DNA from: Perkinsus chesapeaki ATCC PRA-425
Taxonomy: Eukaryota; Protista; Perkinsozoa
Direction: 5' to 3'
Assembly (NCBI GenBank): GCA_013115145.1
Contig: JAAPAO010000002.1
Coordinates: 124,001 to 188,000, forward strand
Length of the DNA stretch: 64,000 nt
In this document: positions 5,184-33,792 of the stretch, one piece after another
Layout: each line of letters begins with the position of its first letter
How positions within the stretch are numbered: the stretch's first letter is position 1
The notes under the pieces: generated by a model
Seen by the model: the letters and a program-made list of their open reading frames with translations, nothing else
Told to the model about the DNA's origin: nothing
The model's database searches: none
Made by a program: the position numbers and the translations under genes

Positions 5184-7519
5184 TTATATTTGGACTGCAA
5201 CCGCGGCCCCGGAAATGTTGTCTCCTGCAGCTATTGTGGCGACAGGCTTCGTGCAGATGATATTGGGGCTGAGGCAGATGGTGACCTTATCCGTGGACTC
5301 GGCATCGCGTGTGTCATCCCAACACACAACCTAAGTAGGAGGTCATATTTAGAAGTAAGAAGGTATCACCCCATTGTTATGCTTGGTCTTTATAACATCA
5401 CGCCTCTGGGCCAGATCCTCATCCTCGCTATCCACAAAAGTATCATACAGGAGAACCTTAGAAAAAGAAGCATAATCATCTGCGTACACCTACCATTCCT
5501 CCAGTACCTTTCCTTTACTTAGATCTATATCTTCATCAGTCTTAAATCCACATACATGTCGGAATGCGATTAAACTAGCTTTACTCATAGCCTCGGCTCT
5601 GAAAATGAATTCACCCTACCAGTTGCACCAACATAGCCAATAGCTACGTTCGATTCCATGCACCTGTCTTGACCATAACGGCCTGGAAGGCTAACGTATG
5701 AACGTGTATTCGGGAGACTTGTCTTGGGGAAGTGCTGATATAACAGAACTGATAGGCACATAGCGAAGATCACAGGCATTACGAGTTCTCATTGGCCTTT
5801 TCAATCAGCTGCCAGAGATTCCTTAAAGCGTCCAGAACGCTTCGTACTTTTGGCCTGGAATCCGATGCGCGAATAAGCCCCGCGTCGCCCGTCGCGGATT
5901 TACTGACAAGAAGTGTAAGCAGCAAGAACGCGTACAGCCCGCAATCTCTTAACGACGCAAGCTGCCCGGAATGCACACCTGAAACTACCTTAAAAAATCC
6001 GTAAAGGTAGCAAGCTCTTGCTCGTTCATCCCGAGACTATCTATTCTCGTAAGCATGCCAGTATCGTAGAGCTCCTTCATAAATTTAGCTGAAAGGTCCG
6101 GATGAGCCTCATGGACACCGTGGGAATTCGGGATGACTTACAGTTAGCAAAACTGGCAAGCTCGACATGGACCTTCACGGAGGGGTCCTGTTCATCTATG
6201 AGCTGTCGCGCTCGCTGGAGTCTTTGCAAACGCTCTCCGTCAGATGGGAAAGGGAATCTGAGGGAAGTGTCTTTACGCTCTTAACTTTAGGGGCTACTAC
6301 CCATCCATCATCTGAAAAGCGCCCAGGACGAGCGCGTCTGGGTTGAAGGCTCCCGAATTAATCTCTTCCTCAACTTCCTCTATACCACGCAGGTACGGGG
6401 AGTGAGCATCGCTGTGAAGCGCTGAAACAAAGGACTTTAGGGAATGGCCAGTTTATCGATTATAGATGCTATGCTAATGCAGCCTACTTACCTAGGCGAT
6501 TCGCGCGCGGGCAAGTGTCGTTTCCCCATTGCTCGTCCGAGACGCTCTCAAGGATGATATGAATATCATCACTATCTGGAGATAAGCCTGCTGGGTCTTG
6601 CCAAGACATCGTTTAATGTACCTTCCGGGGAAGAGGGGGCCAAGCCTCCCGCCACAGGCAAGGGAGTGGCGAACTGATCTCGGAGCTCTTTCGAGACGTG
6701 CGCGCCGAGCAAGACCTTATGTCCCTGAAATAGCCAAAGTACCATCAAAACTCGGCAATCTCCTGAGGAATCCCGGTATGACCTCCATTTGTATCCGGCA
6801 TCCCATATGAGGAGCGTTGCCGCCGAACCTCCAGAAACTGCCATAGTTGTCTCCAAACCCGCGCACGCCGCTCACCAGCTCGTCGAATAGAGTCTTGTTC
6901 GAGACGTACCTAGCGCTCCTCTAATGTAAGCCTTAAGGATCAACCCAAATACCTCTCAGCTGCAGCTCCATGCTCGAAAAAGTAATGGAAAGTTTCGGCG
7001 AGGTCTTGCGGGCTAGTAATGACGTCGTGGTCCTGTGGGTGCTCAACTGGCCCAATCTTGAGCTGAGTAACACAGAAAATTATTTACTCCTCAGCCTTCA
7101 ACTGCATCAGGTTACCTCCTTCAAAAGCTCTGTGCCACGAGTCACACCATCCAGGCATGCGCCGAAGCCGAGGACAACGTTCTTTGGATGAGCCTCGATT
7201 CGTTGACGTGTTGCAGCCTCTTCCGACAACTGCGCCTACGTCAATATGTAATACTTCCTTACCAACTACATGAACTCGCGCTACTTGCAAAAGCTCAGCT
7301 TTATCAATCAGCTTTCTATCCGGTGGATGAACAAATGCCTTATTCTGATGTACAGTCGGGTGACCACCGTATTCTCCCCCCAAGTATCTACCGAGCAGGC
7401 CTGTAAGCCGAACCACTTGTACGCCAACTCCATTCTTACACATATGTCACCGCGACGAAGACAACCAGCAAAGGTAAAAATGCATGTATCAGCGTCGGGA
7501 GTACTCCACCCTCAACCAT
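5184..7519 (-). CDS. ADPGK: ADP-dependent glucokinase with N-terminal hydrophobic anchor
   Basis: Spliced motifs KNVVLGFGACLDG, VHVELASF, IDSLGMNEQEL and C-terminal CLSPNIICTKPVATIAAGDNISGAAVAVQI* are typical of the ADPGK/PfkC family. First exon MVEGGVLPTLIHAFLPLLVVFVAVTY. Confidence 0.85.
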
Positions 7520-7528
7520 TATCAGTGG

Positions 7529-7550
7529 CTGCTAAAAACAAGAAACTAAA
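7529..7550 (-). promoter_or_regulatory. Putative trans-splice acceptor (polypyrimidine tract plus AG) upstream of ADPGK
   Basis: Minus strand tttagtttcttgtttttagcag lies 9 nt before the ATG, and no upstream coding donor is obvious. SL trans-splicing is known in perkinsids and dinoflagellates. Confidence 0.35.
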
Positions 7551-7999
7551 CCGCCCACTTCCAAGTGCTCTCTAGCCTCGCCGATTCTGTCGTGGAACTC
7601 AACGTACAAACAGCAAGTGATAGCAACATCATTTACATACAAGTGCATTTCTAAAGCTCATGATTTCCAGTGCGGTCTGCAGACACGACCCTGTATGAGT
7701 TGGATGTACCCTGGAGAGGAAAATCCTCATCACATTCATTGTAGAAAAGAACGCTATTGAGTAGTCGATACCTGAGCGAACTGCTGAGCTACATACTATA
7801 CTCTTACTCCCATATTCTTACACGAAAGTATACAAGCAAATTACTAATAGTGAAAGGAGACAGCTTCTTGTGTAGGATTTGCGGTGCTTCGGAGGGCGTT
7901 TAGACATCAAAATGGAACTAGACGGCATGTACTACGAGCGTCTTTGTGAACCCAACTCCCGAATAGATTACACCAAGCAACATGGGTGGTGGATTAGTC

Positions 8000-9045
8000 T
8001 TAAAAGGCATTATGATCGAATTCTAAGGAGCATCCTGAAACGAAAATCCTGTTACAAGCTCGAGAGGAAAGACGAAAGCCCTAACAGCTCACTTTAGTGG
8101 CCAGAAGACCCAACTCAAGAGATGTCTGATAAATCGTGCTAATATTGCGCACCTCCCAACCAGGCTGACAGAACGATAGGTATGCCTTGCACGCCAGTCG
8201 CCAGGACTCTCCTCGTTAATACCTCAGCAGTACTCCAGTCTGCTTGACGCTCCTCCTCAGTTAGTCCCCAAAGCTGCCCTCCGCCGGTGACTGTGACATC
8301 AACCTCCGAACCATCATCGTTGACTTCGCCGGCAGATTGCTCGTCGCCATCGTCCCCTATACAGCTTCGTTCGCCAGAGCTCCTCCAACCGTGAACCCTT
8401 ACCGTCTGGAGTGCTTGCTGAGCTTGATAAGTTCTTGACAGTATTCAAACGAGAAACTGATGAAGAAACCTGGGCATTGCACCTCGGAATGACGCGAGCC
8501 TCCTACTTCCCGACATGAACGTCTGCATAGTCCGCAAAGTCTTGGCGGACTTCACCCAGAGGTCGTGAATGGCTCTTCGGTCAGCCATGGGGTACCACTC
8601 TCTCAGAAAAACGACCACATAGTTGCACAACTGCTTAAGAACCTGCAACGGCGGTCGGGCAAAAGCAGTGGCAGACCGCGCCAAGACCTTCGTGTGCCCG
8701 ACGTTGCGAGGATCGAACAGCTCGTCATTGTCAAAGGTTTTCCTCTTGCCCTCGACGCAAATGAACTGCAGTACCCCAGTTGTAGTTCTCTTATCGAACA
8801 ACGGGTATGAATGGAGGACATATCTGTATGAAGTAGTTACGAGCGAGCAAACCATACACGAGCACGTTTCTTCCTTGGATGAGTCTCGCCGATGGATATA
8901 GCTCTCGGATGAGTCAGGCGGGGAAAGGTCCACAGAAGGGTCGTAAATAGCTGCAAGCTTATCCGGCTGAGAAGAGTGGCTCCGATGATTTCGATTTTTT
9001 TGTGAACCTTACTTGCCCCTTTTTCGGTGTACCGTCATCCGTCAT
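8000..9045 (-). CDS. Hypothetical multi-exon protein (boundaries approximate; may be continuous with the upstream GAF gene)
   Basis: Protein-like 162-aa ORF 8445..8933 containing CSCMVC, flanked by plausible short GT-AG introns. No family recognised. Confidence 0.4.
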
Positions 9046-15046: not shown

Positions 15047-15958
15047 TTACCTAAATCGCCTCGCATGGAAGGTGAATTTCCTTCGTTGGCTTGTCGGCAT
15101 CCACGGGTGCCGTTTCTTACTACTGAAGAGCGAATGATAACGATAGGAAAAATGAGGATTAGCCACCGTTCAGAACGGTCCATTCTTACGGTAGCGCAGC
15201 ATCGCACTTGGGTTGCTTATTGTCTTGTTGCTCTCCGGAATCCTATCAAATGGGTTGGTATTGGATAAGACACTCTGCCGTACTTACCTTCCTTGAGCTG
15301 AGCGGCGTTGGTCGACCTGCCCGGGAGACCCGACTCTCTACCACCACGCGAACTTCACGGCGTTTAGGAGTATGAGTCTTGGTCTGACGACATCACGTGC
15401 GAGGAAGGCCGGTGGTCTTCTCAGCTTACAAGCTCCACGTTCTTCGAGATTGTTTTCCGAACTCGCCCGCCGATTACCTACACAAAAGGTAACCGGTTAC
15501 ATCGCTTTCATATTGCATTTTACACTTTTCTTCTTTCCTTCTTCTGGTGTCCCTGCAGCATTCGCTAGGCACTCAGTCTCCCCTTGTGGGAGAGATGCAA
15601 TGACACTGCTTCCTTGCTCGACCAGTGGATCCGAGACTCCTTTACGCTTCGGCACCCTCTTCGCTTCTGCCTTTGCCTTCGGCTTGGGCGTACTCGCGCT
15701 CGTGGCAGTATGTGCTCGTTTTCGAGAAGATGGTTTCTTCTTGTGTGAAATGCTACTTCGCTTATTAGCTGGGCTTTCGAGCCCAGTTACTTCCGGCGCG
15801 GCTCGCTTAGGGGTTGCAGAAGGCTTGTTCGTTTTCCCGACTTCCCGAGTCTTCCTAGGAGTACCTCACAGAAATAGCTCTCAGTCTCGTTTTTTATGCG
15901 ACCAACCAACTTCTGAGAGAATCTTCGTCAAACACGGCTTGGCTGAGCTTAACACCAT
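15047..15958 (-). CDS. Lys/Ser/Arg-rich low-complexity hypothetical protein
   Basis: Minus-strand exons such as KTREVGKTNKPSATPKRAAPEV...PKPKAKAEAKRVPKRK, joined by GT-AG introns. The + strand ORF 15372..15962 is its antisense shadow. Confidence 0.45.
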
Positions 15959-16387
15959 GTAATCTCGCCGAAGACCGCAGTGGGACCTCCTCTGGCAATT
16001 TCGCTGTCATAGATAAAGAGTTCTGAAGAGCTGGTTTTCAGTTGGGCGGGCCGCAGCAAGTAATTTGATTTACTACTGTTCACTGAATGAACATGAACGT
16101 TTATTCATTTGGCACATGAATATCACTAAGATATATAGCAACAGAGTCCAGGTTCGCAGCTTCTTCGGTAGGCTTCTAGAGGTTCGCTCGAACTCTCAAC
16201 ACAATAACACGCAGTAGACAGTAAAAACTCTCCTGTTACAAATGACAAAAAGTAATTAAAGCGTTTTCTGTTCAAGTGGGAGAGAATACATACTTGGTCG
16301 TAGCATCAGTTACGAAGTGGCATTAGTACAATAATTTCTATTAGACATAAAAAGTGTTAGCATGGATATGTCAAAAAATCTGATTGT

Positions 16388-19300
16388 TCATGCGAAAGAG
16401 TGCCACGAATCCTCGACTGGACGTCCATCGGGGGAGCTTTCGTCACCAGCTTCGGGAACTGATATGGCTAAGCGTATGCGCTCAGGTGTAGCTGGGCATA
16501 CGAGCTGGAAATGCTTCCGGTTACCTCTCGCAGCATAAATTGCCTCCTTGATAGCATAATAGACCTGCAGAGATAAAGGTCAGGAGTACCGAGGATCACG
16601 CGAGTGAAAGGAATGGAGAACAAACCAGAGAATGTCCTTACGCTTGCACCTCCAAAGAGGGGAGGCTCACCGACTGCCTTGCTGGCTCGAATAGTTGGAC
16701 CGCTAGTCCTATCGTAAAGCGCGACACGAAAGTCGCAGGGAATGTCATCGAGGGAAGGGATCTTGTATAGTCCGGGCCCCTAAGAGAACACCTCAACTCG
16801 AGGATAAAGAATTAAACCACGCTCACCTTAGTGATCAGCCTGCCCTGCTTATCATAGACTAGTTCTTCCATACAAAAGAGACCATATCCCTGCATGAAGG
16901 CACCTTCAATCTGACCGATGTCGATCGCTGGATTTATGGACTTCCCAACATCGTGGACAATATCAACACGTAACTGAACAGCGTATGGACGAGTATTGCG
17001 TATGTTTCGCTCTTACAACCCGTGTTTCACCAGTGAGCACGTCAACTTCAACTTCCGAAGCCGCCGCTCCATAGGTGTAGTAGTAGAAGGGCACAGAATT
17101 GAAAGTATTAACCTAAGCTCCCGGTAGGTAAGTGCAAGTTATACCAGCAGAAAGACGCGCCGTTCCCAACGTTACCTCTTTCTTAGACCAATCGGCCCCC
17201 GCGATTTCTGGGGTCCTGTAGAATCCCACAGCGCTGAGACATTTGCGATCGAACCTACGACAAGGAAGGAGCTATCCACATTGGCACTAACAAGTCTAAT
17301 ACCACGCTTTCGTGGCAGCGCTCGCAAGCCTCGCCTGGGGATCGCTGATGGAAGAGTCCTCGTACGCCTGAGACCGTGAGATCAGTACTCGACCATCGAC
17401 CCTCTGCCGACCTTGATAGTTTCCTTTAATTGCCGGCAGGCATCAACCGCGGCATTAGCATTGAGGTCAGTTCCACTTGAAGCCGCCGTTGGCACTCCAT
17501 TGGGAGCTCGGCTGGTGTTGGCCTCAGATATGTGAATCGCGTCAACAGGGATGCCTAGCTCGCTGGCGACAACCTGTATAGAACGCTGCTCTACCGCAAG
17601 TTGAAAACGGCTTACTTGTGACACTTTAGTATTCAATCCTTGTCCCATCTCAACGCCGACGTGACAAACTTGGACAGACCCGTCCTTTTGAAGGGTTATT
17701 AGTGCGGTAGCTTGGTTAAGATGTGTAGCAGTGAACGATATACCGTACCTGACCAGTACAGGTAATAGCGCGAGATAGCTGGGCAAACCATCTACCGTAT
17801 AGGGACAGCAGCAATTCCGCGCTTCAGGTAGGAGTTCTTCTTGTTGTATTCGACGATTTCCACTCGACGCTTGTCAAATTCCGACTCCTTCATTAATTTT
17901 ATCCACATGTCTTCTGAAGGGACCTGGAAAGCAATGGTATGGAACACCTGCGGGATTGGGTCATCTTTTAGCCTTGCCTCATCCCCAAGATGATGATTGT
18001 AATGTGTCAAGTTAGCGGCGCCTTGTGGACCACAAGCCCAGTTAGCAGCTTCGAGCTCTTCTCGTCTGATTCCGAGCTCACAAGCGGCATGCTCGAACAT
18101 CGCCTGAAAAAGCGACTGTTAGACAATAAGACATTCAAGCAAGCATACCTCCGCAACAGCCTGTCCCTGAGGTCCTCCAAATCCACGGAATGCTGTATTG
18201 CTCTCTATATTGGTCTTAGCCAAGCGTCCTGATAGTGAAGTTACACTACGGATATGAGATGCTGACGGAGTTCTGACCAGTGACTCGGACATTTCGCACG
18301 AAACTAGCATTCGTCATATGCATCATAGCTCGGTTCAGCACAGGTTCGGACAGGTCGTGAGAGTAGCCAGCGTTCGCCTAGAGTTGACCTTAGCTTCTGC
18401 GTAGGACTGGGCAACTCACGTATAAGTCTACATCAGCGGCGACCAACTTCCTGTCGCTCCTACGAACGGCGACAGTATAATCAGCGAGGAAAGCGTGTCG
18501 CTTTCCACTGTTAGCCATGTCTACATCGCGGTCCATTTGGAAACTAATCAAAGAGGCGTTCGAAACTTGACTCGATTTGGATGCCACCCACCGAGCAGGT
18601 CGGTTAAACTTGACGGCTGCAAGAGCCGCATAGGAGGCCAAAATGCAAGATCGAGACTCCTTACCGCCAAATCCGCCGCCTGAGCCGATAAACAAATTCG
18701 ACCAGAAGCAAAACCAACGCACCTCACCTATTCTCTTCGTTCGGACAACAACTCGATTTAGCGGTATCCCCAGAACTTCGGCAATGTGCATCTGGGTCTC
18801 ATGGGGGTGCTGCGTTGACGAAAATACTTCGACTTCAGTGCCCCCATCAGCTGGCACGGCTCGGGCACCCTAAACAATAGAGCTAATGTGGCCGTTCTCT
18901 CATGAAGTTGAGACATTACGGAAAAAGTTTTATTACATTGGTTTCAAAATAAAAATGTTCTTGCCCGGCCATTTTGAAACGGCCCTTGACAACAGCAAAT
19001 TCGTCTGGTCGAGATAAACAGTGTTCGATAACCTCCTCGATATTAGCGCCCATGTCAAGGTCAATCACCTTATGGATGCACGCGGAGTCGCCGCCACCTG
19101 GACAAGACCAACGTCCTAATAGCGGGGCTCAGTCTAGAAATTACCAACAAAAAGGAGCTCATGGAAGCTCTTCTCCCTAATAGCATCCTCGATACTGACA
19201 ATAGGCGGCGGACGCTCTTGCGAGTATGTAACCTAGGATCACGAGACCAACTGCAATATCGGCGCACGATCTGCTGTATATTACCTTCACGGCTCTGGCC

Positions 19301-22300
19301 GAAACGCGGGCTGCATAACGGCTGGTTGCCGCCACGATTGCGATAATCTTGAGAAAGAACAATACTGGTGACCATGTGAGCGTACCTCACCTGCCCACAG
19401 TGTGATACGTTGAAACCGGCATCTGCAACAGCAAACACCGGCTCATCGTGGGCAATAGCACCAATCGTGTGTACCCCCGTGCAGTCCTTATGCGTGACCT
19501 ACTAAAAACGTTACAAAGTCGACCTGGAACAGACACTCACCTCGCCAACAAATCCCTCAACATCACGACAGCGACTGAAATCCATGGCAACCACCGATCC
19601 AGTTGACTGGGTTGAAAGTACAAAGTCGATGTATAGTTCATGGCGGCTATAAGGGGTGTCGTCAAAGTAGTCGGCGCAGCCCCGCACCTTTGAAGCAACA
19701 CGATCATCCTGAAACTCGGGCAGCCTTCCTTACCTGCTTGTCAGCAGCCAGATGCTTCACTGGCTTGCCCACGGGATCTAGAGGATCTCCGAGTGGCATG
19801 TAGTACTGAATTCCTTTCTTGTGAGTTGGCACAAAGTTGTACCTAGCATCAGGCCTCGCATAAGATCGAAAGCCTCGAGACTCACTCTGTGGCACCAGCA
19901 GGCAACCCCATACAAAACTTATACATAACTGCGCGAGCTAATGCCATACGATACTTCGTCATTCCTATAATAGATCGTAACGGTTAGCGTCAGATTCGCA
20001 TCTCTCACCTCCAGGCGTCTCAGGGGCCAACACGAATTCGGCTTTGATGGTATCCATAATTCTCTGGGTTGTCTCGACACAGCCTATCCGGTGCCCAACC
20101 AGCGCTTTCTCGGTTCGGAACGCACGAATCTGCGGAAGTTCACTCTGACCGTTGCCCACTGATCGCAGAAACTTACAGTAGTCGGAGCCATACCACCTAA
20201 AGCCACGCGGGCATCGGTAACTCTGCCGTCTTCTGTCATGTACACAGCAATAGCAGCGTTCACAATAGATAGATCATCTTGACGACGTCTTGAGTGCTTG
20301 AACACACGGAAACTGCTGGGACGCTAGCCGGCACCCAGAAGCTCATTAGCCATTACCTGTCGTATCGCAGTGGGACCGTGACGCTCACAAGCACTTCCTT
20401 ATCCTGTAGGTCAACCTTACGATATGATATGAAAAAATCATCAATAGCAACCTAATTTGGAGAAGAATACGAATAGCACGGATAGATCGTCCACAATACT
20501 TCTCTGTATTCGATTTCGCCAGACTCCAGCCTTGCTATGCGGCATGATGCACCAGCAGCTAACCAAACCACGTTGAGATCTGAAGGAGGGCATAGAAAAG
20601 TAGCGAGCCAGGAAGGACGCACCAGAAATAGGGCTTGCTGTAGCAATGTTTCCTCCGATCGTGGCAACGTTTCGAATGTGTTCAGAGGCAAAGAATCGGA
20701 GCATCGCTGTTATCCCTCGAAGGCTGACATGAGAACAGTCGGGAGTGGAGCTAATCGAACCGAAATCGTAGGAACCTCGAGATTTCTTAGTTTACCACTA
20801 AGTAGACGATCGCGAAAGTTATACGCGGAATACCCCAGTGTACACAACTTAATATGCCATATACAGAATGAAATTGGTATAGGATACCAGGTATACCAGA
20901 GTCATATACTAAATATATAATCATCTCAACGAAGGAGAAACTAGAATATCAAACTGAGTTAGCTTAGTAGTCACAAGGGCTTACACATCTGACCCACAGT
21001 GATCAGATTCTTCAATGAGTTCCTTCAAGGTGGTGAGAGATACAGCAGAGCCTATAGTGGCGTAACCAGAATCCTGGTCTAGCCTGACTGAGTTCATCTC
21101 GCCTTTCACCTAAAACCGGCCATATAATACATTGATGACTTTTACCTCACCCTCGCCGTTGAGATTAGTGCCATAGGGTACGCGTGGTCATCGCGGAAAA
21201 ACTTGTCAATCCTGCGCTCAGAGTGGCCTCCAGCAAGCCTAAACAAGACCAGGACTAAGAATCAAATCTCCAGCGAAAGTTCATCTGCAGCTCTACCTGT
21301 AGTTCCCAACGTAGGTGATTATAGTGAGAAGCTCGTGGAGAGAGGTGGGCCGATAGTAATCGCATGGAAGTCCAACATGCTTTCCATGCAGAAAGAGTGG
21401 ACGATCCAGATTACCGGGGAGAAATTTGGCTTCAGTCAACTTATTGGCAGAAGACTTCATGGAGGGGGTCTCCGCAGTTGTCAACGAGTTGTCGCTCAAG
21501 TGCACAGATGCGTCGGTGCCCTGAGAAACATGAAATAATAAAAACACGACTGAACCGCCTTACCTCTTCTTCTCCGTCTTCGGCGTTTTCCACCAAGTTA
21601 TACATACCCTGTATAATTGGCCTGTAACCGGTACAACGGCATAGGTTACCATCAAGAGCCTCCTCTATATCACGAATCTGCGCGACATCACACAGGTGAA
21701 ACCAAGTTGATGCAGATTCAAACACTCACCTCTCTTTTGCCATCCTCCCACTTAGCGTAAACGCTCATCACCATACCGGGGGTACAGTACCCACATTGAG
21801 AACCATGAGCTTCAGCTAGGCTTCTCTGGATCGGGTGCAAAGGGGTGTTAGCGGGTCCTGGCACCGACATGGAAGACGTTATAAAGGTTCTGCGTTACCA
21901 TGCTTCTTCGACTTGCAGTCGCCATCACCAGAACAGGGCCCACCATCGGCACATTTGCCCTCGCAACTCTCACCCTGCAGAAACCAAGTCGCAACTTCAC
22001 ACAGTCGAGCCTGTCTACCTTGACTCCTTCAATTGTGGTAACTTCACATCCTGCGACGTCACAGACAGACACGAGGCACGAGTTTATGGAACGATGGACA
22101 GGCTAAGAGGCAAAATCGCAGAAGTAGAGTGACCTCTCAAATGGCGCACCTTTCCTGTCACAATATCGGTCGTGTAGACAGATACAGTGCAAGCACCGCA
22201 ACCACCTTCGCCACATGCTAATCTGGTACCGCAACGGCCGGAAGCCCTCAGCCACTCAAGTAGTGTGCATTCAGGGTCGACATCTTCCACGTGGACGGGC

Positions 22301-22453
22301 CTACATCAGAGAGTGAGCTAGCCCGATAAACAAAAAGCTAGAGGCTTACTCTCCATTAACAGTGAAACGAAGGCCTCGTACGGCCTGGTCCTCATAGTCC
22401 CTCAAAAGTTTTTTGGTGCGACGCTCTCGTGTGTGATGAGCAGCCGGTTTCAT
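16388..22453 (-). CDS. XDH: Xanthine dehydrogenase/oxidase, copy A (canonical active site)
   Basis: 2Fe-2S motifs [11 protein letters not shown] and [12 protein letters not shown]; FAD domain [23 protein letters not shown]; Moco domain [51 protein letters not shown] and KAVGEPPLF. Many short introns; TGA at 16388-16390. Confidence 0.92.
16862..16976. repeat. Near-identical tract shared by the XDH paralogs (matches 23661-23775)
   Basis: 76 bp are identical (16862-16937 vs 23661-23736), and about 115 bp differ by 3 mismatches on visual alignment. Confidence 0.85.
21589..21680. repeat. Near-identical tract shared by the XDH paralogs (matches 28621-28712)
   Basis: 92 bp with a single mismatch (cctgtaacc vs cctataacc). 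Confidence 0.85.
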
Positions 22454-23181
22454 AAGGTTATAAGGTTCACGCAAAACTGATAGTTTCGAACTATGCACAG
22501 TCACGCCATCTTGACGCGCCGACGAGTGTCGCAAGACTGGGCGAGCGAAAACCCTGGGCTCACAGGTGACTGCCACACGTAGCCGTAATACATAGTAAAG
22601 ACCGAACTTGCATTTTAAGGGATGTGATTTCCAGGATAGTTCACGAGTCGCTAGCGTCGCACCTGTTCAAGACCAGATACTTCTACCGACCATGAGAACA
22701 CAACATTATGACCGGATGGCAACGACGATACAGCTGATTGGCTGAAACCCGGGAATGACCCACTAGTCTAAAAAATGATCGAAATATCCGATCAACATGG
22801 AAGAGATGTTGAGCACTGCTTACGGAAAGCTGCCCTTAAAAGCCCTGTGTCATCATATATGGAAAGAGTGGTTGAATAGTACTCTACTTCTAGAAAGAAA
22901 AGGCAACTTGTTAAAAAAAGTACATATCCACTATGTGGTCAAATTACAATAATGTGTCTGTGGGCCATCCCGGCTACGGGACTGTACCAGAGTTGGGCCG
23001 CCTATGGCCGCTCAGTCCGCAGTCATACCCCTGTACTGGCACTCGCTCGCCCGACCAAAGAAGTGCTGTACGATAAAAAATGAGTGTCAAAATCATAGTA
23101 TTACTGGGTAACATAGGTACGGAGGTCTGGGTATTGGAGATATATGCCTCAACTATTAGAATTCTACGTCTTCGTAACCGA

Positions 23182-26100
23182 TTATGCAAAAGCATGCCAC
23201 TTCGCCTCTACAGACTCAAACTCATCATGCTCATCAACACACGGGACGGCAATGGCGAGGCGAACGCGTTCGCAAGTAAGAGGGGAAGTTAATGGGAAAT
23301 ACCTCGTAGTATCACGAGCCGAGTAAAGTGCCTCTTTAATGGCCAGGTAGACCTGACAATACACCGTTTTTGACAAGGAAACGACTCTACCGCTTCTGAG
23401 CTCACACTAAAAGCACCGAATAAGGGAGGTTCGCCCACGGCCTTGCTTCCACGAATAGTGGGTCCTGTTGATCTAGAGTATAGCGACACACGGAAATCAC
23501 AGGGTATATCATCAGCTGAAGGGATCTTGTACAGGCCAAGGCTCTGAGGAGGGGGGAAGTAGGCGAGACCGATTGTCAGGACGTTCATTTCTCTGACATC
23601 ACAGTTAAGAAACGTACTGGCCTACTTTAGTGATCAGTCGGCCCTGGTGGTCGTAGATGGGTTCTTCCATACAAAAGAGACCATATCCCTGCATGAAGGC
23701 ACCTTCAATCTGACCGATGTCGATCGCTGGATTTATAGATTTCCCAACATCGTGGACAATATCAACGCGTAACTGGAAAGAGGACGTGTCATGCTCAGTA
23801 AGGAAAGCTAAACGACTCACAACGCGAGCTTCGCCCGTCAAAAGATCAACTTCAACCTCAGAGCACGCGGCTCCATAACTATGATAGTAATATGGACTAC
23901 TGCGGAATTCGTTAACCTGTCCGGGGACAGAGAAACCTGCTGAACAACCGCGTCAGTAGTGTTGTAAGTCACCTCTCGCTTGGTCCAGTCGATATCCTCG
24001 TCAAGTGGCACACGATAGTAGCCCACAGCACTGAGACAGCGACGGTCAAACCTAAGCCATCAAACAGAGATTTCAAGCTATGATGGAGAGGGGCCTAACC
24101 AGGCCTTCGTCACCGCTGCCGCGAGCTGCTTTTGTCTGTCGTGAATGGTCGAATCCCTATAGGGCTGAGACGCGTATCATGTGGACCGACAAAGAGCAAC
24201 TAACTCACCTGTATCGTTACCCGTAGCTGCTCACATGCATCTAGAGCCGCGTTTGCATTGAGATCTGTGCCGCTAGAGGCTGCAGTTGGCACTCCATTGC
24301 CTGTGCGACCAGTATTGGCCTCAGAAACATAAACAGCATTGAAGGGCACGTCCAGCTCACTCGCAACGACCTGATGAACAAAAAACGTAGCTGGCATTCA
24401 TGATAAGATGAGGATACCAGCGGAGCAGAAGTCACAATACACAGAATACAGTGAGTTCGCGTTTGTTGGGCAAGTCGATTAAAATTGAATATTTCAAGTT
24501 AGAGTGATCATATTTAGTCAAGTCCAATCATACTACCTGGCAGACTTTCGCGTCCACTCCCTGACCCATCTCTACTCCGTTATGACAAAGCTGCACAGAA
24601 CCATCCTTTTGCAAAGTGATCAGCACCGTAGCTTGATTGAGAAAAGGCTCGTCGTAAGCACAGCCAAACCTAAAACCTTTATCCGTCAAATGTCCTGTAC
24701 CAGCGGCGGCCGTGCTATCGCACTTTACCGTATCGGAACGGCTGCTATGCCCCTTTTCAGGAACTCGTTGGTAGGGTCAGAATTGAACCCCTTAATTTCG
24801 CTTCTTCTTCGCTCAAAGCCCGCATCGGCCATTAGCTGTTCCCACGTAGCCTTGGAGAGCACCTACCAGTACACTGATCCGCGAAAGCTAGAGGCAGCTG
24901 TCTCCATCACTTCCTCGCCGAGACTCTGTCCGTAATGTGTAGTGTTGCTCTCTCCTTCAGAAGTAGCTAAGTTATTTGCTACAACTGTTTCCCGATTCAA
25001 GCCTATCTCACGACCGATGTGCTCATACATGACCTGGTAAACCAACTCAGTACATCAAAAAGCCCATCAGGGCATTCACGCCACGAACACGAAGATCAAG
25101 AGACACATATCGACAAACCAACCTCAGCGATAGCCTGGGCCTGTGGAGCCCCAAAGCCCCTAAATGCGGTGTTGCTCTCGATATTGGTTTTAGCCAACTT
25201 TCCTGAGACACACTCATCAAATCTCACACCACAGGGATAGTTTCGATGAATGCTCTACCAGTCACACGTATATTCCGAATAAAGCATGCGTTTGTCACGT
25301 GCAGGAGCGCCTTCTTGAGAACGGCTTGAGACAAGTCTAGCGAGTAACCTGCGTTCGCCTGAGAGCGCCCCAGTTGAAGTGGCGATGAAAGTATAGATAA
25401 GCCTACGTAAAGCATAATATCTGCGGCCATCAGCTTGCTATCGCTCCTCCTGGCAGCAATCTTGTACTTCGCCAGAAACGGATGTCTTTTTCCAGTGTTA
25501 ACCAAGTCCACATCTCGAGACAGTTGAAATCTGAGAATGCCCGCCCGGCAATAGGTGCGCTAATCAGGGAAAGGTTACCTTGCGGGTCGGGTGAACTTGA
25601 CCGCCGCGAGAGCAGCGTACGGTGCTAGAATACAAGACCGTGTTTGCTTTCCACCGAAACCCCCGCCTACAATCAAGAATACCACAGCGGAAAATCACGG
25701 ACGATGTGTTTCTAACGCAGGCTTACCGAGTCGTTTGGTCCTTACGACAACACGGTTGTATTGAATTCCTAGAACTTCTGCAATGTGCATCTGAGTTTGG
25801 TGCGGATCTTGCGTTGAGGAAAAAACCTCGACCTCAGTGCCTCCGTCATAGGGGATGGCCCTAGCAGCCTGAAGGTAAACGCCGTTCTCTGCACGTATCC
25901 TGTGGCATAAAGATCGCTGCTCATATCGGTCAGAGATTTATATAGAGAATGATAAAAGTACTATTGCGTAGATATAACAAATGAAATATGCCGGCACTAG
26001 GACCTGGAGGTCACCCACAGGCGAGATGCAGAGCCCGAGGACAGTCAAGTCGACACTACGCTGTGTAACAAAGACTTGTCAGAAACTCTAAACACGGACC

Positions 26101-29100
26101 CAAATAAATTTAGTTGACGCTACTTGAGTTTCAAGATACATGTGCTCCTGACCGCCCATTTTGAACTCGCCGCTAACCACAGCGTATTCATTCGGGAGCG
26201 CCTCGTAGTGAGACATGAGCTCACCAACGGAAGCCCCTTGGTCCAGATCAATAACCTTATGGATGCGTAGATAATTCTCTTTTCCTAAAAGGATCGGCGC
26301 AATGCAAACCAGATTGCATCAGTCACTTGATTTTGGTGGGAGCCTAACCTACCAACAACAAGGAGGTCATGGAAGGAATCAGCTTCAATAGCATCCTCTA
26401 TGCTGACTAGAGGCTTTGGAGGATTTTGGGCATACGTTACCTGAAGACGACTAGTTACCTTAATGTTACAATCATTGCTAACACTATCACGGCTCACCTT
26501 AACGGCTCTCGCGGCACACCTGGCAGCGTATCTACTCGTCGCAGCTACCATAGCTAGGATCTAATAACTGTGCTGTGCAGACTGTTGAAGGTGTAGGCTC
26601 TACCTGCCCGCAATGGGAGATGTCGAACCCAGCTTCTTTAACCGCGAATAGCGGCTCATCTTGTGCTATCGCCCCGATAGTAGCTTTCCCTGGCAAATCC
26701 TTCCATGTAACCTGAGAGTGGGTCACAGAACAATCGCGACAATGTGAAAGATCCGTCCGACACATCTTTTCGAAAATCCTCACCTCTTCGACAAATCCTT
26801 GTATTCGATAACATTCAGAGAAATCTATCCAGACAACTGATCCAGTGGCCTGGGTAGTTACAACAAAATCTAGAAATAGTTCGTTGAATGATGCTGGAGC
26901 ATCGTCAACATAGTCGACACATCCTTGGACCTGAAGAGAACTTCGATAGTACACCAGTGCTGTACACAACACCAATTACCTGCTTCTCAGCACCGGTATG
27001 GGGCAGTGGCTGTCCCACAGGATCTATCGGGTCGCCAGTCGATTGGAAGTACTGGACACCCCGCTTTGGTATGGGAGAGAAGTCATACCTTGTAACACGT
27101 TGAAAGGAAAACTCAGTCTTATAATACTCACGCCGTTGAACCTGCTGATATGTCCATACAAAACTTAAAAAGGAAAGACCTGGCGAGGACCATTCGATAT
27201 CGCGGCATACCTACCACCGACAGGCATGCTGATGTGAGCTACTACTTAGACATCACCTCCAGGGACGTCGGTGGAGAGATGGAATTCTTTACGTACCGTG
27301 GCAACCACTTTTCTAGTGGAATGAACATCGCCTATGCGATGGCCCACCAAGGCCTCTTCAGCTTCTCCAGCGCGCACCTGAGCAAGTTCATCCTAATGTT
27401 TGAATAAGGATGCTATGAGTCCCTCGCTTACCGTGCAAGGTGCAAGGCCCCCGAAGGCAACCCTAGCCTTTTTTACCCGGCCATCAGCGCCCACACTAGC
27501 CCCGATAGCACAGTTAACGATAGCCAGGTCATCCTGACGACGTCGCGACATCTTGTACACCCGAAATCTGGACGAGGAAGAAGAATCGTCGTTGGTGTTT
27601 CGATTTATTTCACCTCCGGTCATCAACGGGAACGCTGATACTTATGAGCACCTCACCTTGGCTCAAGTCCACTAAGCGGTACCCAACAAAAAAATCATCT
27701 GCTTTCACCTGTCGACAAGATAGCAAGTTTCTAGATAGCTGGTGGCCTAGATACTTCCCGATATTTTATGACGTCGTCTTCCAAACGTGCCAACTTGAAA
27801 GTGGCACCAGCAGCAACCCAAATGACGTTCAAATCTGAACGTCCAAACCCGATCCACGGCTATTTGACGGCCGAGTAGAGCTTACCGGATACGGAGCATG
27901 CAGTGCAGATATTACCCCCCAGCGTAGCGAAGTTTCTGATGTGCTCGGACGCAAAGACTCCGAGCATAGCTACGAGACCACGAAGCACATCCGAACCACA
28001 GAAGTCAGCTTCTGTGATGATATCCTTTATGGTTGTCAGTGAAACAGCGGAGCCCAGTATGGCATGCCCTGCGGAGCTGTCGAGAAGGACCGAGTTCATC
28101 TCGCCCTGTACCTGATGCAAACCACGATGATGACCACATTACATGAGGGAACAGATGGTAGAGAGCGAAGTAGTGTCAGGAGCCGCAGAGCCTGCTCACT
28201 CTGGAAGTTGATATAATGGCAAGAGGATATGTGTGATTCCCTCCAAAAAACTTTTCGACTCGCCGCTCAGAATGGCCGCCAGAAAGTCTGAGCACACAGT
28301 CCGGGAGCGCACTTCAATCCACTGTTAACAGATATTCTCCTAAACAAGGCTGCGAGCCGCCAGGGGGCCAGGCTCGCGCACGCTATCACCTGTAGTTTCC
28401 CACGTGCCTGGTTAGGGTCAAAAGGTCAATCAGTTGCGTTGGCCTGTAGTAGTCACACCGGGCGCCGAGGTGCCTCCCGGGGACGTATATAGGGACATCA
28501 GGTAGTCCAGGTTGTGATCCATTCACTTCGCTCTCTGCCTGAGCCTAGAACCCATTCAGTAGAGCACGCCTGAGGGGGTCCACCTGATCCGCTCCATTAG
28601 GGATGATCTTTTCAGCATTCTCCACCAAGTTATACATACCCTGTATAATTGGCCTATAACCGGTACAACGGCATAGGTTACCATCAAGAGCCTCCTCTAT
28701 ATCACGAATCTGGCTCACAATTCATAAGCAGAACCCCCCTCCCAATACTACAGTCCGCTTTCCCGCTTGCCACTTGGTGAACGCACTCATAACGAACCCG
28801 GGAGTACAGAAGCCGCATTGAGAAGAATGCGCTTCAACAAGGCTCCTTTGTATAGGGTGAAGTGATTCCCTGCCGCACGAGTACACAGAGTATCACTGCA
28901 GAAGAGCACACACCTTATGCCGCCATCACATCCGTTGGCGACATTTTCGACACCGTTCACGGGAGAGCTGTGACGATCCTAGGGAACATCAGAATAGGTA
29001 TCGGCGTTTCGGAGAAAGTCGAATACCTTGACACCTTCTATGGTCGTGACCTCGCATCCTATCACGTCACACACCGACAGAAGGCAGGCATTTGCAGAGC

Positions 29101-29452
29101 GATGTACCGCCTGAGCAATGTTTCAACTCTACTGGATGAGCCATAGATACCGAGTACCTTTCCCGTAGCGAGATCTGTCGTGTAAATGCTGACAGTACAG
29201 GCTCCGCAGCCCCCTTCTCCACAAGCCAGCTTCGTGCCACAGAGTCCTATGCTACGAAGCCACTCCAGCAACGTAAACTCTGGATCCACATTCTCTAGCA
29301 CAGTGCACCTAGTGACGTGATTCAGCTCGACAAGTCGAATCAAACTACCGTCCATTCAGCTTCAAAGAAGGATAGCTGTCGGCCGACTCTTCGAAATTCA
29401 ACAGCAATGTCTTTCGCCGACGCTGCAAGCTTTCGTCAGATGCAAAGTTCAT
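23182..29452 (-). CDS. Xanthine dehydrogenase/aldehyde oxidase-family paralog, copy B (altered substrate pocket)
   Basis: Same domain order, with shared intron positions where checked. Start [14 protein letters not shown]; motifs [69 protein letters not shown] and KAVGEPPLF. Confidence 0.9.
23661..23775. repeat. Partner of tract 16862-16976
   Basis: Direct visual alignment of the two copies. Confidence 0.85.
28621..28712. repeat. Partner of tract 21589-21680
   Basis: Direct visual alignment of the two copies. Confidence 0.85.
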
Positions 29453-30051
29453 CTCAAAATCCCTGAGTTATTCCGCATTGGCAGCCACTTGACAACACAA
29501 GCCTTCAGGTTTATAATGTAATTCAATAATCCGGCCCCTCAGCCCACTGCTACTGCAAGTGAATCAAAGATCGCCATGGTGTAGGACCTTATACTACAGC
29601 CACGAGAATAAAGATAACAATGTTGGACATCAGTGAGAATACAAGCAACAGTAGTAGGTGCAGTGGTGACTTCAACGACTGATAATGCATACTGCTTCAT
29701 GGCGTTATGGGCAAAGTGGCAAAATCATACAAACCTTCAGTAAAAACGAGCCGGCAGAGAATGAGCTCACAAAAGTAGGTGATACCCTAGACCGATACAT
29801 GCTGCCAGTATGGTTTAACCGACGAACCCCAAATTATAAATAGCACCTTCCAGCCAGGCCGGTATTCACCAGCATCGGGAACTTCGTCGCTGCATTCAAA
29901 GTACTATGAAAACAGAGCACTACCAAACAAATCAATGGTACACTGCAGTATTGCAGCAGCTACTAGCACAGATGGCGGGGAGCTAGTAGGCTCCAACAGC
30001 AACCCGAATAACAGCTACAAGCGGACGACCGAAGCCTGTCATCAAACCCGT

Positions 30052-33000
30052 TTACCACGGCGATTTCTCCGTTACGGGTTCGAGCTTGGAAGATGTCGGT
30101 TCTGAGCCTTTACTGCGAGCATACAAGCCGATTCTATCTTGGTTCTCAGACTCGCTAAAGGCATAACCGGTCGAGTTGACACGGTCACGAAGCGGCCTCG
30201 GTGCTGGCTCCTGGGCAACTTCAGCCGAGGCCAACGTGGTGGTACGCTCGATGGCAGTGAGATTAGGAACCAACACTTCAGCAGCACCGCCTACTTCCGG
30301 ACCGCCTTTACCAATCACAAGATCATGCACACCCATATGAAGCCTCTCCTTGACGATACGAGCATTATCAGGATGGAAGAGAGACATATGAGTGTGATAG
30401 AAGATGAGAGGTAAAACAGCGGTAGCCCAGGCCATAAGGCAGATGGCAACCCCCATAGGGTTAAATAGTATATCCCACAGGAAATCACGATACATTATGA
30501 ACAGGGCCGCGATGAATACGACAGTACAAATATTATACAGAACGTGAGTAGTGAACCAATGGAAGGAGTTGACCCAGCGATAGATCATTAGGTTCATTAG
30601 AGGAATCAAGCACACCATCACTAGAACCGATAGCTCAGGCAGAGTAGTAACTACCATACCAGATCGGTTCCTTATAAATACACTGGAAAAGCAAATACTT
30701 ACTATCAAGCAAGCGCCTCCGACATAAAAGGCGTGCCAGAACCACATGCCCAGCACACGCTTAGAGAACAGCGGCCTAGGCCATTTGTATAGGAATGAGC
30801 ACCGGGCGAGGATGTTGTAGGGTAAATCTCTATCAAATACAGCATAGGCCATGACGGGAAGGAGAGTAAATAAGGTATTGTACCAGGATTTGAGGAAAGC
30901 ATCATATATAATAGAACCCGAGAACATGCAGAAAGGACCAAACAACATAGCCAATATTCCAAAGGCAACATTCTTGAACACAGTGTAGTAGATAAAGAGA
31001 GTGTTCTTCCTAATGGTCTCACGACCGTGTACGAAAAGAAGCCTCTGCAAATTGCAAAACCGTGGGATTGCAAAATCTGCAGCTCTCACGGCCTGGGCTC
31101 CCTCCCGGCCAGCAACACCGACACCAACGTCGGCAGTAACGATCATACCCACATCATTGGCACCATCACCGATGGCCAACATAGTTCCACTGCTGTGGTA
31201 CTTTTGGCTCCAAGCGACAACATCTGCCTTTTGAGCTGGTGATACACGGCATGCAATCACCGTACCACACTTAGTCAAGCCAACCGAGAAGAACTCCTCC
31301 CGCAGATCACTCTGTGCCAAGATAGTAGCGAGACAATCACCCAAGATAGTCAGGGAGACCGTCCGGGGTGGTGCACCGCTATCAGATATGTCCTGGAGCT
31401 TCTCCATGATCTCCTTCTCGTTCATGTCAGGATCCTGCATCACAAAGTTCTCCCCATGTGGGTCTATAAGGTTGCTCGACCTTCCGATGTTGATGGCGGT
31501 TTCCACCTTATCTCCGGTCAAGATCCACATACTTATACCAGCAGCCCGGATTTCAGCAATTGTCTCGGGCACATGGTCTTGCAGTTTATCTTCAATACCA
31601 GTAGCGCCAACGATGGTGATACCCATCTCGGCCTGTGCTATCAGGTCACTGAGAGACTCAGCGTCTCCATCGGCACGGGCCTTAGCATAGCTTTGACGCC
31701 AAGAATCCAGTGGGAAGTCAGTGAGATCACGAATGCCCAAAACCAATGTTCTGAGACCCTGGGTAGCAAGGCCCAGAAGATAGCTGGTCAGGCCCTGCGA
31801 GTCGGTCTCAGGCCGGGCGATTTCTAGCATAGTGGAATCTGCTCCCTTGACAAGGAGCACGACCTTACCGGTGGTGGGACTGCGCACGATAACACTCATG
31901 CGCTTGCGTACGTTGTCAAATTCTAGGACCTCCAAAACCTCGTAGTTTATAAAATCAGTGTCATCAGCAGCACCACCATCATAACCGATTAGCTTCTTAG
32001 CCCAGTCGTCGGTGAACTTCATGACAATATTGTGAGCGCTCGGTCTTCCCCAGAACTCGAAACCAAGTGCTCGGGCGCCAGCAACCAGAGCTAGCTCATC
32101 AGGTGATGATGCATCATAGAGATCCTCGCTATCATCATCAGGCTTGGGGTCTTCTATTTGCCCGCCACTGCTCGAGCCGCCACCATTGGTCTCGAGAGAA
32201 GCGGAAGATTCAAACTTCTGTGTCATCATATTTACTTGTCCGTGAACTGATACGTCGTCGGAATCAACTTCATCCCGTTGCTGCCGAAGTACAGAATGAC
32301 AGAGTCCCAAGACAAGCAAAGAGCGACGGAGGTTAGCCTGGTCCTTGCCAGTTGAAAGTGCTTGAATGCCTCTAGAGGGGAATATCGGACTCACGTGGGT
32401 ATCAGTCGGCCGCATAGAATGGGGGTTTGGGCCGAACTTCCGGTTTAAGTCACCCATGATACCAAGTGTATTAAGAAGCATGCAATTCTCCGTGAGAGTG
32501 CCTGTCTTATCTGAAAACACGTGAGTCACGCATCCCAGATCATCGGCCGTTCCAGCCGAATTGGTTGACGCCTTCACATCGCCATAGGTCATTTTCCTAT
32601 CGCGAGAAATGATATAACCCTGCACCACCTTGACGATCTCCAAAGTAGTCAACAGAGAGATAGGGACAAAGAGAGTGAATTGAAGAACAAGGCGACCAAA
32701 AACTTCAATCACTTCACGGATCTTCGTACCAATGGTTTCCTCCGGACGCTCCAAATACCAATTATCCTGCCATAGGTTGCTCCACAGAGCGTAAGAGACC
32801 GCCGATATAATACAGAAAAACATTTGTAGTGCGAAAAGCTGCAAGATATGAGTGTTATACATCTTCATAAGCTTTGACATCTTATATCTTCCCGAAGAGG
32901 ACGCCGCCGAGTTGACCATCAGTCTAGTGTTGTGACCTGTGTAAACAACAACGCCCCAGGCATATTTCGTGGTTCTTATACTTGACCCACGAAGCACCAG

Positions 33001-33792
33001 CTGATCAGCCGACAAAGCCACTGGGGCCTCGCTATTCACGACGATAGACCCAGTGAATGAGTACAACGATGCCGTCGGCTGCTCATACACAATACGGACG
33101 CAAAGATGGTCATCAACATTAGCCGACGCCGCAGCATTCATCTTGCGCACATCTAATGCCTGCGTCTCCTCAAGGCAGACCTTAGCCTTCAGGTTAGTCT
33201 CACCATCGAGATCTTTGGTTTCGACATACACAGTGCCAGTATCGTCGGAACTCGATAGCAAGACCATATCAGCAGGAACACCTTCGCCCTTCCGGAGTCG
33301 CACCACATTACCAACCACCAGACTAGACCACGGAACCTTCTCCAACTGCCCTGTGGCAACGTTCAATCGCACAGCTTGCCTGGAGTTCTCAACAGCATCA
33401 GATCTATGCCTTCTATAATCTTCGATGGCATCTTTCAAAGCGGTCACACCGAGCACAAGTGCCAGAGGCGTGAGCATAGTCGGTTTACCATTAGAGTCAG
33501 AGATTGCAGGTATCAATTGCAACATTGCCATGCAGAGAAAATAGACGTTGGAGAAGACGTGGAATTGGTACCACAAGTTCTTGGGCAGAAACGTAAGCAG
33601 TGTGTATTTACTGGTCATTATTGAATTTGACCAGCTCTGGACACATTTACTGCAGAGCTTCGGTACGTTAACCGCACATATAAGTTGCGCATCCTGGGGC
33701 ATTGCATCCTTCTGCTTTCGACATAAAAACTTCGGCAGATAGCGCCGCCAGGACTGACGCTTTGTCTCTGAAGACGCGCCTATCCTAGGCAT
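30052..33792 (-). CDS. P4-type ATPase (phospholipid flippase), intronless, 1246 aa
   Basis: DGETNLK, PISL in TM4, DKTGTLT phosphorylation motif, TGDKVETA, GDGANDVGMI and the P4-type TM layout. Confidence 0.95.
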   Translation of the reverse strand: MPRIGASSETKRQSWRRYLPKFLCRKQKDAMPQDAQLICAVNVPKLCSKCVQSWSNSIMTSKYTLLTFLPKNLWYQFHVFSNVYFLCMAMLQLIPAISDSNGKPTMLTPLALVLGVTALKDAIEDYRRHRSDAVENSRQAVRLNVATGQLEKVPWSSLVVGNVVRLRKGEGVPADMVLLSSSDDTGTVYVETKDLDGETNLKAKVCLEETQALDVRKMNAAASANVDDHLCVRIVYEQPTASLYSFTGSIVVNSEAPVALSADQLVLRGSSIRTTKYAWGVVVYTGHNTRLMVNSAASSSGRYKMSKLMKMYNTHILQLFALQMFFCIISAVSYALWSNLWQDNWYLERPEETIGTKIREVIEVFGRLVLQFTLFVPISLLTTLEIVKVVQGYIISRDRKMTYGDVKASTNSAGTADDLGCVTHVFSDKTGTLTENCMLLNTLGIMGDLNRKFGPNPHSMRPTDTHVSPIFPSRGIQALSTGKDQANLRRSLLVLGLCHSVLRQQRDEVDSDDVSVHGQVNMMTQKFESSASLETNGGGSSSGGQIEDPKPDDDSEDLYDASSPDELALVAGARALGFEFWGRPSAHNIVMKFTDDWAKKLIGYDGGAADDTDFINYEVLEVLEFDNVRKRMSVIVRSPTTGKVVLLVKGADSTMLEIARPETDSQGLTSYLLGLATQGLRTLVLGIRDLTDFPLDSWRQSYAKARADGDAESLSDLIAQAEMGITIVGATGIEDKLQDHVPETIAEIRAAGISMWILTGDKVETAINIGRSSNLIDPHGENFVMQDPDMNEKEIMEKLQDISDSGAPPRTVSLTILGDCLATILAQSDLREEFFSVGLTKCGTVIACRVSPAQKADVVAWSQKYHSSGTMLAIGDGANDVGMIVTADVGVGVAGREGAQAVRAADFAIPRFCNLQRLLFVHGRETIRKNTLFIYYTVFKNVAFGILAMLFGPFCMFSGSIIYDAFLKSWYNTLFTLLPVMAYAVFDRDLPYNILARCSFLYKWPRPLFSKRVLGMWFWHAFYVGGACLIVSICFSSVFIRNRSGMVVTTLPELSVLVMVCLIPLMNLMIYRWVNSFHWFTTHVLYNICTVVFIAALFIMYRDFLWDILFNPMGVAICLMAWATAVLPLIFYHTHMSLFHPDNARIVKERLHMGVHDLVIGKGGPEVGGAAEVLVPNLTAIERTTTLASAEVAQEPAPRPLRDRVNSTGYAFSESENQDRIGLYARSKGSEPTSSKLEPVTEKSPW

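Follow-up and report, generated by a model that had tools for sequence, protein, structure and literature searches.

A tandem xanthine dehydrogenase paralog with a rebuilt substrate pocket in Perkinsus chesapeaki: a candidate hydroxylase of another polar N-heterocycle

Aldehyde oxidases (AOX) and the fungal nicotinate hydroxylase are the textbook examples of enzymes that arose when a xanthine dehydrogenase (XDH) gene was duplicated and a copy changed its substrate. In the XDH reaction, Glu1261 (bovine numbering throughout) is the general base. Two further residues, Glu802 and Arg880, form hydrogen bonds with the purine and activate it (PMC3624778), and XDH-derived aldehyde oxidases never keep them (PMC5746545). 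That aldehyde oxidase genes derive from XDH duplication is stated in PMC6321594, which cites Rodriguez-Trelles et al. 2003. In the fungal paralog HxnS, nicotinate specificity was gained at the Phe1009-Thr1010 loop (PMC5746545). Here we describe two tandem XDH-family genes, copy A and copy B, on the minus strand of a 64,000-nt stretch of contig JAAPAO010000002.1 of Perkinsus chesapeaki ATCC PRA-425 (hereafter the window). Over 26,066 bases the window agrees with the contig of assembly GCA_013115145.1 without a single mismatch. Copy A is a canonical XDH gene. Copy B, judged by its residues, would be a functional member of the xanthine oxidase family of molybdo-flavoenzymes, maintained by selection, that arose by an old tandem XDH duplication and hydroxylates another polar N-heterocycle, a reading to which we assign a probability of about 0.6.

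Both genes lie where the initial annotation had placed them, copy B with exactly the limits given there (Table 1). The XDH region has no long open reading frames and consists of dense minus-strand coding segments interrupted by very short introns. Gene models were obtained with a purpose-written protein-to-genome aligner, which admits GT/GC-AG introns in any phase and penalises frameshifts without forbidding them, using the full-length relative P0025 and the P. marinus protein P0151 as queries; a few poorly conserved linkers were curated by hand. Both loci aligned end to end and each model is a single open frame. The P0025 runs contained no frameshift at all, and the P0151 run on copy B contained one, at a point where an intron has been left in the P. 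marinus annotation itself (this P. marinus model also omits about 150 residues). The coding sequence of copy B is 4080 nt long in 35 exons without a frameshift, and all 34 of its introns are GT-AG, with a median length of 48.5 nt. Introns of copy A have a median of 47 nt, one being GC-AG and all others GT-AG, and its model agrees with the NCBI protein P0268 of P. chesapeaki at every aligned residue (100% identity). The two copies share 64.6% protein identity. Their intron positions agree in column and phase for 32 of the 34 introns of copy B, the other two falling in indel-rich linkers, and the site of the 261-nt intron of copy A corresponds to a continuous exon in copy B (27886-28111).

Copy B retains what the chemistry of the family needs. 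Pfam hits on its exons follow the order Fer2, Fer2_2, FAD_binding_5, CO_deh_flav_C, hammerhead, MoCoBD_1 and MoCoBD_2, and four cysteine motifs, at residues 64, 92, 152 and 185, supply the eight 2Fe-2S ligand cysteines of both clusters. The environment of the molybdenum cofactor (Moco) is kept as well, with Gln767, Phe914, Arg912 two codons upstream of it and Ala1078-1079, and so is Glu1261. By domain order, Fe-S cysteines, Glu1261 and Moco environment, copy B is an XDH/AOX-type molybdo-flavoenzyme, and it shares all of these features, together with the flavin adenine dinucleotide (FAD) domains, with canonical XDH as represented by bovine 1FO4 and by copy A. The retained core had been listed in the initial annotation (Glu1261, Phe914, Gln767, both 2Fe-2S motifs and the FAD domain) and is borne out by the 1FO4 alignment and Pfam, with one correction: Gln767 is not the Gln of G-Q-E-H, where it had been placed, but that of the S-S-T-Q motif. 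Both Gln residues are conserved and the conclusion is unaffected.

The substrate pocket is another matter. Bovine numbering was set by aligning the exons of copy B to chain A of bovine XDH (1FO4), which puts Gln at position 802, Lys-Lys at 879-880 and Cys-Ala-Tyr-Asp-Glu at 1007-1011, where the bovine enzyme has Ile-Ser-Phe-Thr-Val. Further states of copy B are Asp768, Ala876 and Phe1013. Set against canonical XDH, copy B thus lacks both the Glu802/Arg880 pair and the Phe1009-Thr1010 pair, the latter being Tyr-Asp, and also differs in an altered FAD loop. Copy A keeps Glu802, Arg880, Phe1009 and Thr1010, and the XDHs of P. marinus and P. olseni have the same canonical pocket residues. In a set of 230 full-length family members, Glu occupies position 802 in 228 and Arg occupies position 880 in 224, with Phe at 1009 in 220 and Thr at 1010 in 189; the changes in copy B lie well outside what chance would give. 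The codons first pointed out at these sites are correct (Glu of copy A at 18657-18659, Gln of copy B at 25644-25646, Lys of copy B at 25311-25313), and the claim of replaced purine-specificity residues alongside a retained catalytic core stands. Copy B is not an allele, an assembly error or a product of mis-splicing: its key pocket codons lie well inside exons, each 2-3 bases different from copy A.

These residues suggest a mechanism. With its two 2Fe-2S centres, FAD domain, Moco environment and Glu1261, copy B would have the parts for substrate hydroxylation and electron transfer, and, lacking the XDH residues for recognising and activating hypoxanthine and xanthine, it would hydroxylate a substrate other than xanthine. 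The replacements (Gln, Lys, Lys, Asp, Glu) are predicted to leave the pocket polar and hydrogen-bonding, and their chemistry argues against a hydrophobic one, while an aromatic sandwich is formed by Phe914 and Tyr1009. Polar or charged new residues combined with a retained sandwich make another polar N-heterocycle, resembling a purine, pteridine or pyridine, the most likely substrate, ahead of the hydrophobic aldehydes on which AOX typically acts. Purine catabolism would still be the task of copy A. Apart from the pocket, the FAD loop of copy B (27887-27910) reads A-C-S-V-S against A-S-P-I-S in the family, altering three columns that are at least 93% conserved, and this might alter flavin reactivity or the choice of acceptor.

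Table 1. Positions of the two XDH-family genes, their diagnostic codons and associated features (window coordinates)
Feature	Position	Strand	Description	Basis
Copy B	23182..29452	-	XDH-family gene; 35 exons, 1359 aa	Protein-to-genome alignment and curated model
Ends of copy B	ATG at 29452; stop codon at 23182-23184	-
Copy A	16388..22453	-	Canonical XDH gene; 36 exons, 1388 aa	Model
Gln at bovine Glu802, copy B	25644..25646	-	CAA	Aligned to human and rat XDH and 1FO4 range 794-824
Lys-Lys at bovine Glu879-Arg880, copy B	25311..25316	-	AAG AAG	Aligned to 1FO4 865-896
Loop Cys-Ala-Tyr-Asp-Glu at bovine 1007-1011, copy B	24648..24662	-		Aligned to 1FO4 1005-1048
Glu at bovine Glu1261, copy B	23430..23432	-	Catalytic base, kept
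Gln at bovine Gln767, copy B	25809..25811	-	S-S-T-Q motif, kept
Phe at bovine Phe914, copy B	25153..25155	-	Kept
Gene-conversion tract 1	B 23661..23766 = A 16862-16967	-	Moco-binding exon; ~97-98% base identity
Gene-conversion tract 2	B 28621..28712 = A 21589-21680	-	Second 2Fe-2S exon
Predicted 45-nt intron of copy B	28539..28583	-	GTGGAC...GCTCAG; holds the sole in-frame stop of the copy B locus
261-nt intron of copy A	20724..20984	-	Also in P. marinus; no counterpart in copy B
P4-type phospholipid flippase	30052..33792	-	Upstream neighbour of copy B; intronless open reading frame, 1246 aa, own stop at 30052	Pfam

Neither of the two described outcomes of XDH duplication matches copy B fully. 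Like the animal and plant AOX (human AOX1, mouse AOX3), it is an XDH duplicate that has lost Glu802, Arg880 and Phe1009-Thr1010 and kept Glu1261 (PMC5746545, PMC6321594), and the definition of AOX as an XDH-derived paralog without Glu802 and Arg880 (PMC5746545) would include it. Unlike them, it comes from an independent duplication (on the basis of its nesting within Perkinsus, it does not descend from the animal or plant AOX duplications), and its replacements are polar and charge-keeping where those of AOX are hydrophobic. HxnS, the purine hydroxylase II or nicotinate hydroxylase of Aspergillus nidulans, is likewise an XDH paralog, with changes in and around the Phe1009-Thr1010 loop that gave it a new N-heterocycle specificity (PMC5746545); copy B would have changed its substrate too. 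HxnS keeps Glu802 and Arg880, carries an Ala inserted after Phe1009 and has His1013 (PMC5746545), whereas in copy B there is no insertion, position 1013 is Phe and neither Glu802 nor Arg880 remains. The pocket chemistry of copy B therefore differs from the AOX and nicotinate hydroxylase precedents alike. If the proposal is right, it is the first case of XDH duplication followed by substrate change in an alveolate; that copy B represents neofunctionalisation of an XDH duplicate in a lineage with none known before, hidden by a chimeric gene model (see below), is partly supported by our results.

A closer match to the pocket came from screening the collected relatives for unusual pocket states. 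Paralogs of two leaf beetles, Leptinotarsa decemlineata (P0169) and Gonioctena quinquepunctata (P0403), have Gln802, Ala876, Lys880, Tyr1009 and Glu1011, all five as in copy B. They form a clade with 100% support, and its sister group consists of the canonical copies from these two genera, in which the corresponding residues are Glu, Ser, Arg, Phe and Ala. The residue combination of copy B is thus not unique, since the beetle paralogs carry nearly the same set. Each of these chrysomeline paralogs stands beside an unchanged XDH and keeps Glu1261 and Phe914, as does copy B, and one of the two has also lost the Thr/Ser-type residue at 1010. They differ from copy B in keeping Glu879 and Ile1007, in having Ala or Ser and not Asp at 1010, and in deriving from an unrelated duplication inside beetles.

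The occurrence of the same five changes in two unrelated duplicates speaks for a functional solution and against decay, and suggests that the Perkinsus and beetle paralogs may share a substrate class. We tentatively propose, at somewhat less than even odds, that Gln802/Ala876/Lys880/Tyr1009/Glu1011 is a recurrent convergent pocket defining a new specificity class of eukaryotic XDH-family hydroxylases, so far consisting of Perkinsus and chrysomeline leaf beetles, which would have a single polar heterocycle in common as substrate, one distinct from xanthine and from the classical substrates of AOX. Our literature search returned no paper describing the Perkinsus or the beetle case, nor one combining Perkinsus with aldehyde oxidase. 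The independent recurrence in leaf beetles offers a natural replicate and a short list of candidate specificity-determining positions. Other pocket changes were found in further arthropod XDH paralogs (P0392, P0398, P0400, P0413, P0213): Q802/E1010 in Psylliodes, H880/P1010 in three copies of Zophobas, and K880/F1010/D1011 in Oratosquilla. In arthropods, XDH duplication seems commonly to be followed by remodelling of the pocket.

The history of the duplication was reconstructed from a tree of 43 proteins, composed without AOX sequences, in which copy B falls with neither the animal nor the plant members of the family. With 100% support, the Perkinsus sequences make up one clade inside a myzozoan group that also holds Vitrella and marine-transcriptome sequences (probably dinoflagellates). 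Copy B is sister to the group of copy A, P. marinus and P. olseni, both in this tree and after removal of the two gene-conversion tracts, where the A-type clade is supported at 100/99. Without the tracts, a clade of A plus B, as expected of a species-specific duplication, was rejected by the approximately unbiased (AU) test (difference in log-likelihood 36.2, p=0.0013). Since copy B falls outside the other three sequences and the AU test rejects the alternative, the duplication is placed before the split of these three species. The branch of copy B is about 1.7 times longer than that of copy A (0.41-0.47 against roughly 0.24-0.29 on the side of A), and long-branch attraction remains a caveat for its position in the tree. 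On this phylogeny the duplication appears to be an old one within the Perkinsus lineage, unrelated to the animal, plant and fungal duplications; independence from the animal and plant AOX follows from the nesting of copy B within the Perkinsus clade. The tree and the AU test thereby agree with the initial annotation that copy B is a tandem paralog whose duplication was independent of animal and plant AOX. Its further claim of a lineage-specific event holds inside Perkinsus but at the level of the genus and not of the species, as the event predates the separation of P. chesapeaki, P. marinus and P. olseni.

Sequence has passed between the copies since then. In tract 1, exact matches of 76 and 26 nt join A and B, and third-position identity is 0.94 between them against 0.37-0.54 to orthologs; in tract 2 the exact matches are 35 and 56 nt and the identity is 0.90 against 0.35-0.45 to P. 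marinus. These two tracts of about 100 nt, in paralogs otherwise saturated at silent sites, are recent gene conversions. The pocket exons are untouched by either.

As every Perkinsus pair is saturated at synonymous sites, no dN/dS ratio was calculated, and the maintenance of copy B was judged from the proportions of nonsynonymous and synonymous differences (pN and pS), from counts of conserved columns and from stop-codon simulations. Between A and B, pS is 0.79 and pN is 0.24. When only 10% of the nucleotide difference between A and B was taken as neutral, about 5.7 stops were expected and none of 300 simulated runs stayed open. Copy B keeps 95 of 100 columns that are at least 97% conserved in the family (P ~2e-5 if 20% of columns changed at random), and two of the five altered columns are precisely Glu802 and Arg880 (P ~0.002). 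All 68 splice dinucleotides are intact. Long-term purifying selection on copy B is clear. The locus holds one in-frame stop, a TAG at 28545-28547, which lies within the predicted 45-nt intron; an alternative 39-nt intron ending at the TAG would likewise keep the frame. At the corresponding place copy A has a 43-nt intron (21521-21563), and P. marinus also has an intron there.

Several points weigh against copy B being a maintained hydroxylase with a new substrate, and some of them bear on the substrate. Gln and Lys are the mildest possible replacements of Glu802 and Arg880. In the XDH of Rhodobacter capsulatus, loss of the equivalent Glu (Glu232) costs about 10-fold in rate and in binding, and while replacing the Arg by Met costs about 10^4-fold, replacing it by Lys (R310K) costs only about 20-fold (PMC9966888). 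Copy B may therefore still turn over purines, and it could even be mainly a xanthine/hypoxanthine dehydrogenase, a second isoenzyme subfunctionalised in expression or kinetics in which the Gln and Lys swaps are tolerated. Gln is isosteric with protonated Glu802, which is thought to hydrogen-bond the substrate (PMC3624778), the penalty of R310K is small (PMC9966888), and the aromatic sandwich of Phe914 and Tyr1009 is kept together with Glu1261. Such tolerance is difficult to reconcile with the near invariance of Glu802 and Arg880 in the family, and their joint loss with Thr1010, Val1011, Ser1008, Ile1007 and Glu879 does not resemble drift at tolerant sites. Moreover, the multi-site set recurs in beetle paralogs that stand beside an unchanged XDH, which points to a different job. 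We consider a purine isoenzyme unlikely.

A functional analogue of aldehyde oxidase, that is, a broad-specificity oxidase of aldehydes and xenobiotic heterocycles, is more doubtful still. Copy B does share with every AOX an origin by XDH duplication and the loss of Glu802, Arg880 and Phe1009-Thr1010 (PMC5746545; PMC6321594), but in place of the hydrophobic Val and Met of mammalian AOX it carries polar or charged residues, and in the tree it stands apart from animal and plant members. The label 'aldehyde oxidase-like' given in the initial annotation is for the same reason not supported: with Gln and Lys at the swapped positions and with Asp1010, Glu1011 and Lys879, the pocket stays polar, unlike that of AOX.

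The other points against a working hydroxylase concern the gene itself. No ortholog of copy B was found among annotated Perkinsus proteins of 417-2165 aa, a range that leaves shorter fragments, fusions and unannotated DNA outside the search. The P. marinus XDH is a single gene within 10 kb on either side, with no copy B there; in that species copy B has either been lost or is located elsewhere, and it may be dispensable in sister species. The in-frame TAG is spliced out only by way of the predicted intron. Two small (5-Mb) RNA runs gave no match specific to copy B. One 151-nt RNA contig matches it over 49 bases, but since these are identical in A and the remainder reads the upstream exon of A, the contig, a spliced transcript, supports A and not B; it confirms one junction of copy A and shows that A is expressed. 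A young pseudogene, recently silenced or unexpressed and still without accumulated lesions, in which the TAG is a real premature stop whenever the 45-nt intron is retained, would account for the missing B-specific transcript, the missing syntenic ortholog and the 1.7-fold longer branch, but it is very improbable given that the stop is enclosed by a canonical GT-AG pair at the modal intron spacing, at a site with an intron in both A and P. marinus, that about 1130 downstream codons are open and conserved and all splice dinucleotides are intact, and that the recent conversion tracts show a locus still exchanging sequence with A (alone no proof of function).

A candidate remnant of copy B upstream of the P. 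marinus gene was rejected, the Fer2-like fragment there being a 99.9% copy of the 5' end of the gene itself. It belongs to a 746-nt duplicate, 99.9% identical to the XDH 5' end, at 7493-8238 of the P. marinus scaffold (L001), which lies beside a run of N, carries its own annotation as a 148-aa gene and probably arose as an artefact of assembly.

Public annotation has obscured both genes. At NCBI, one 2593-aa product with ATPase and XDH domains (23182-33792; L003 1-9272) combines the upstream P4-type flippase with copy B; it is most likely a gene-model chimera, and because of this fusion copy B is missing from length-bounded protein searches. Copy A is called 'Alternative oxidase, mitochondrial precursor' there (P0268 of P. 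chesapeaki, and also in P. olseni), probably through confusion about what AOX abbreviates. Copy B adds an unannotated predicted redox enzyme to Perkinsus, a shellfish parasite of commercial importance, and could bear on purine or cofactor metabolism there.

Minor features of gene structure were also noted. Three introns are long, at 20724-20984 (261 nt), 25869-26123 (255 nt) and 24371-24536 (166 nt), set against a modal length of about 45 nt, and an Rfam scan of 15500-30500, long introns included, gave no matches. A predicted mini-exon (21899-21974 in copy A, 28914-28978 in copy B) lengthens the stretch between the two 2Fe-2S domains by 22-26 residues; it is specific to Perkinsus, poorly conserved and without a counterpart in other XDHs, and its count of Cys residues is five in copy A, three in P. 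marinus and one in copy B.

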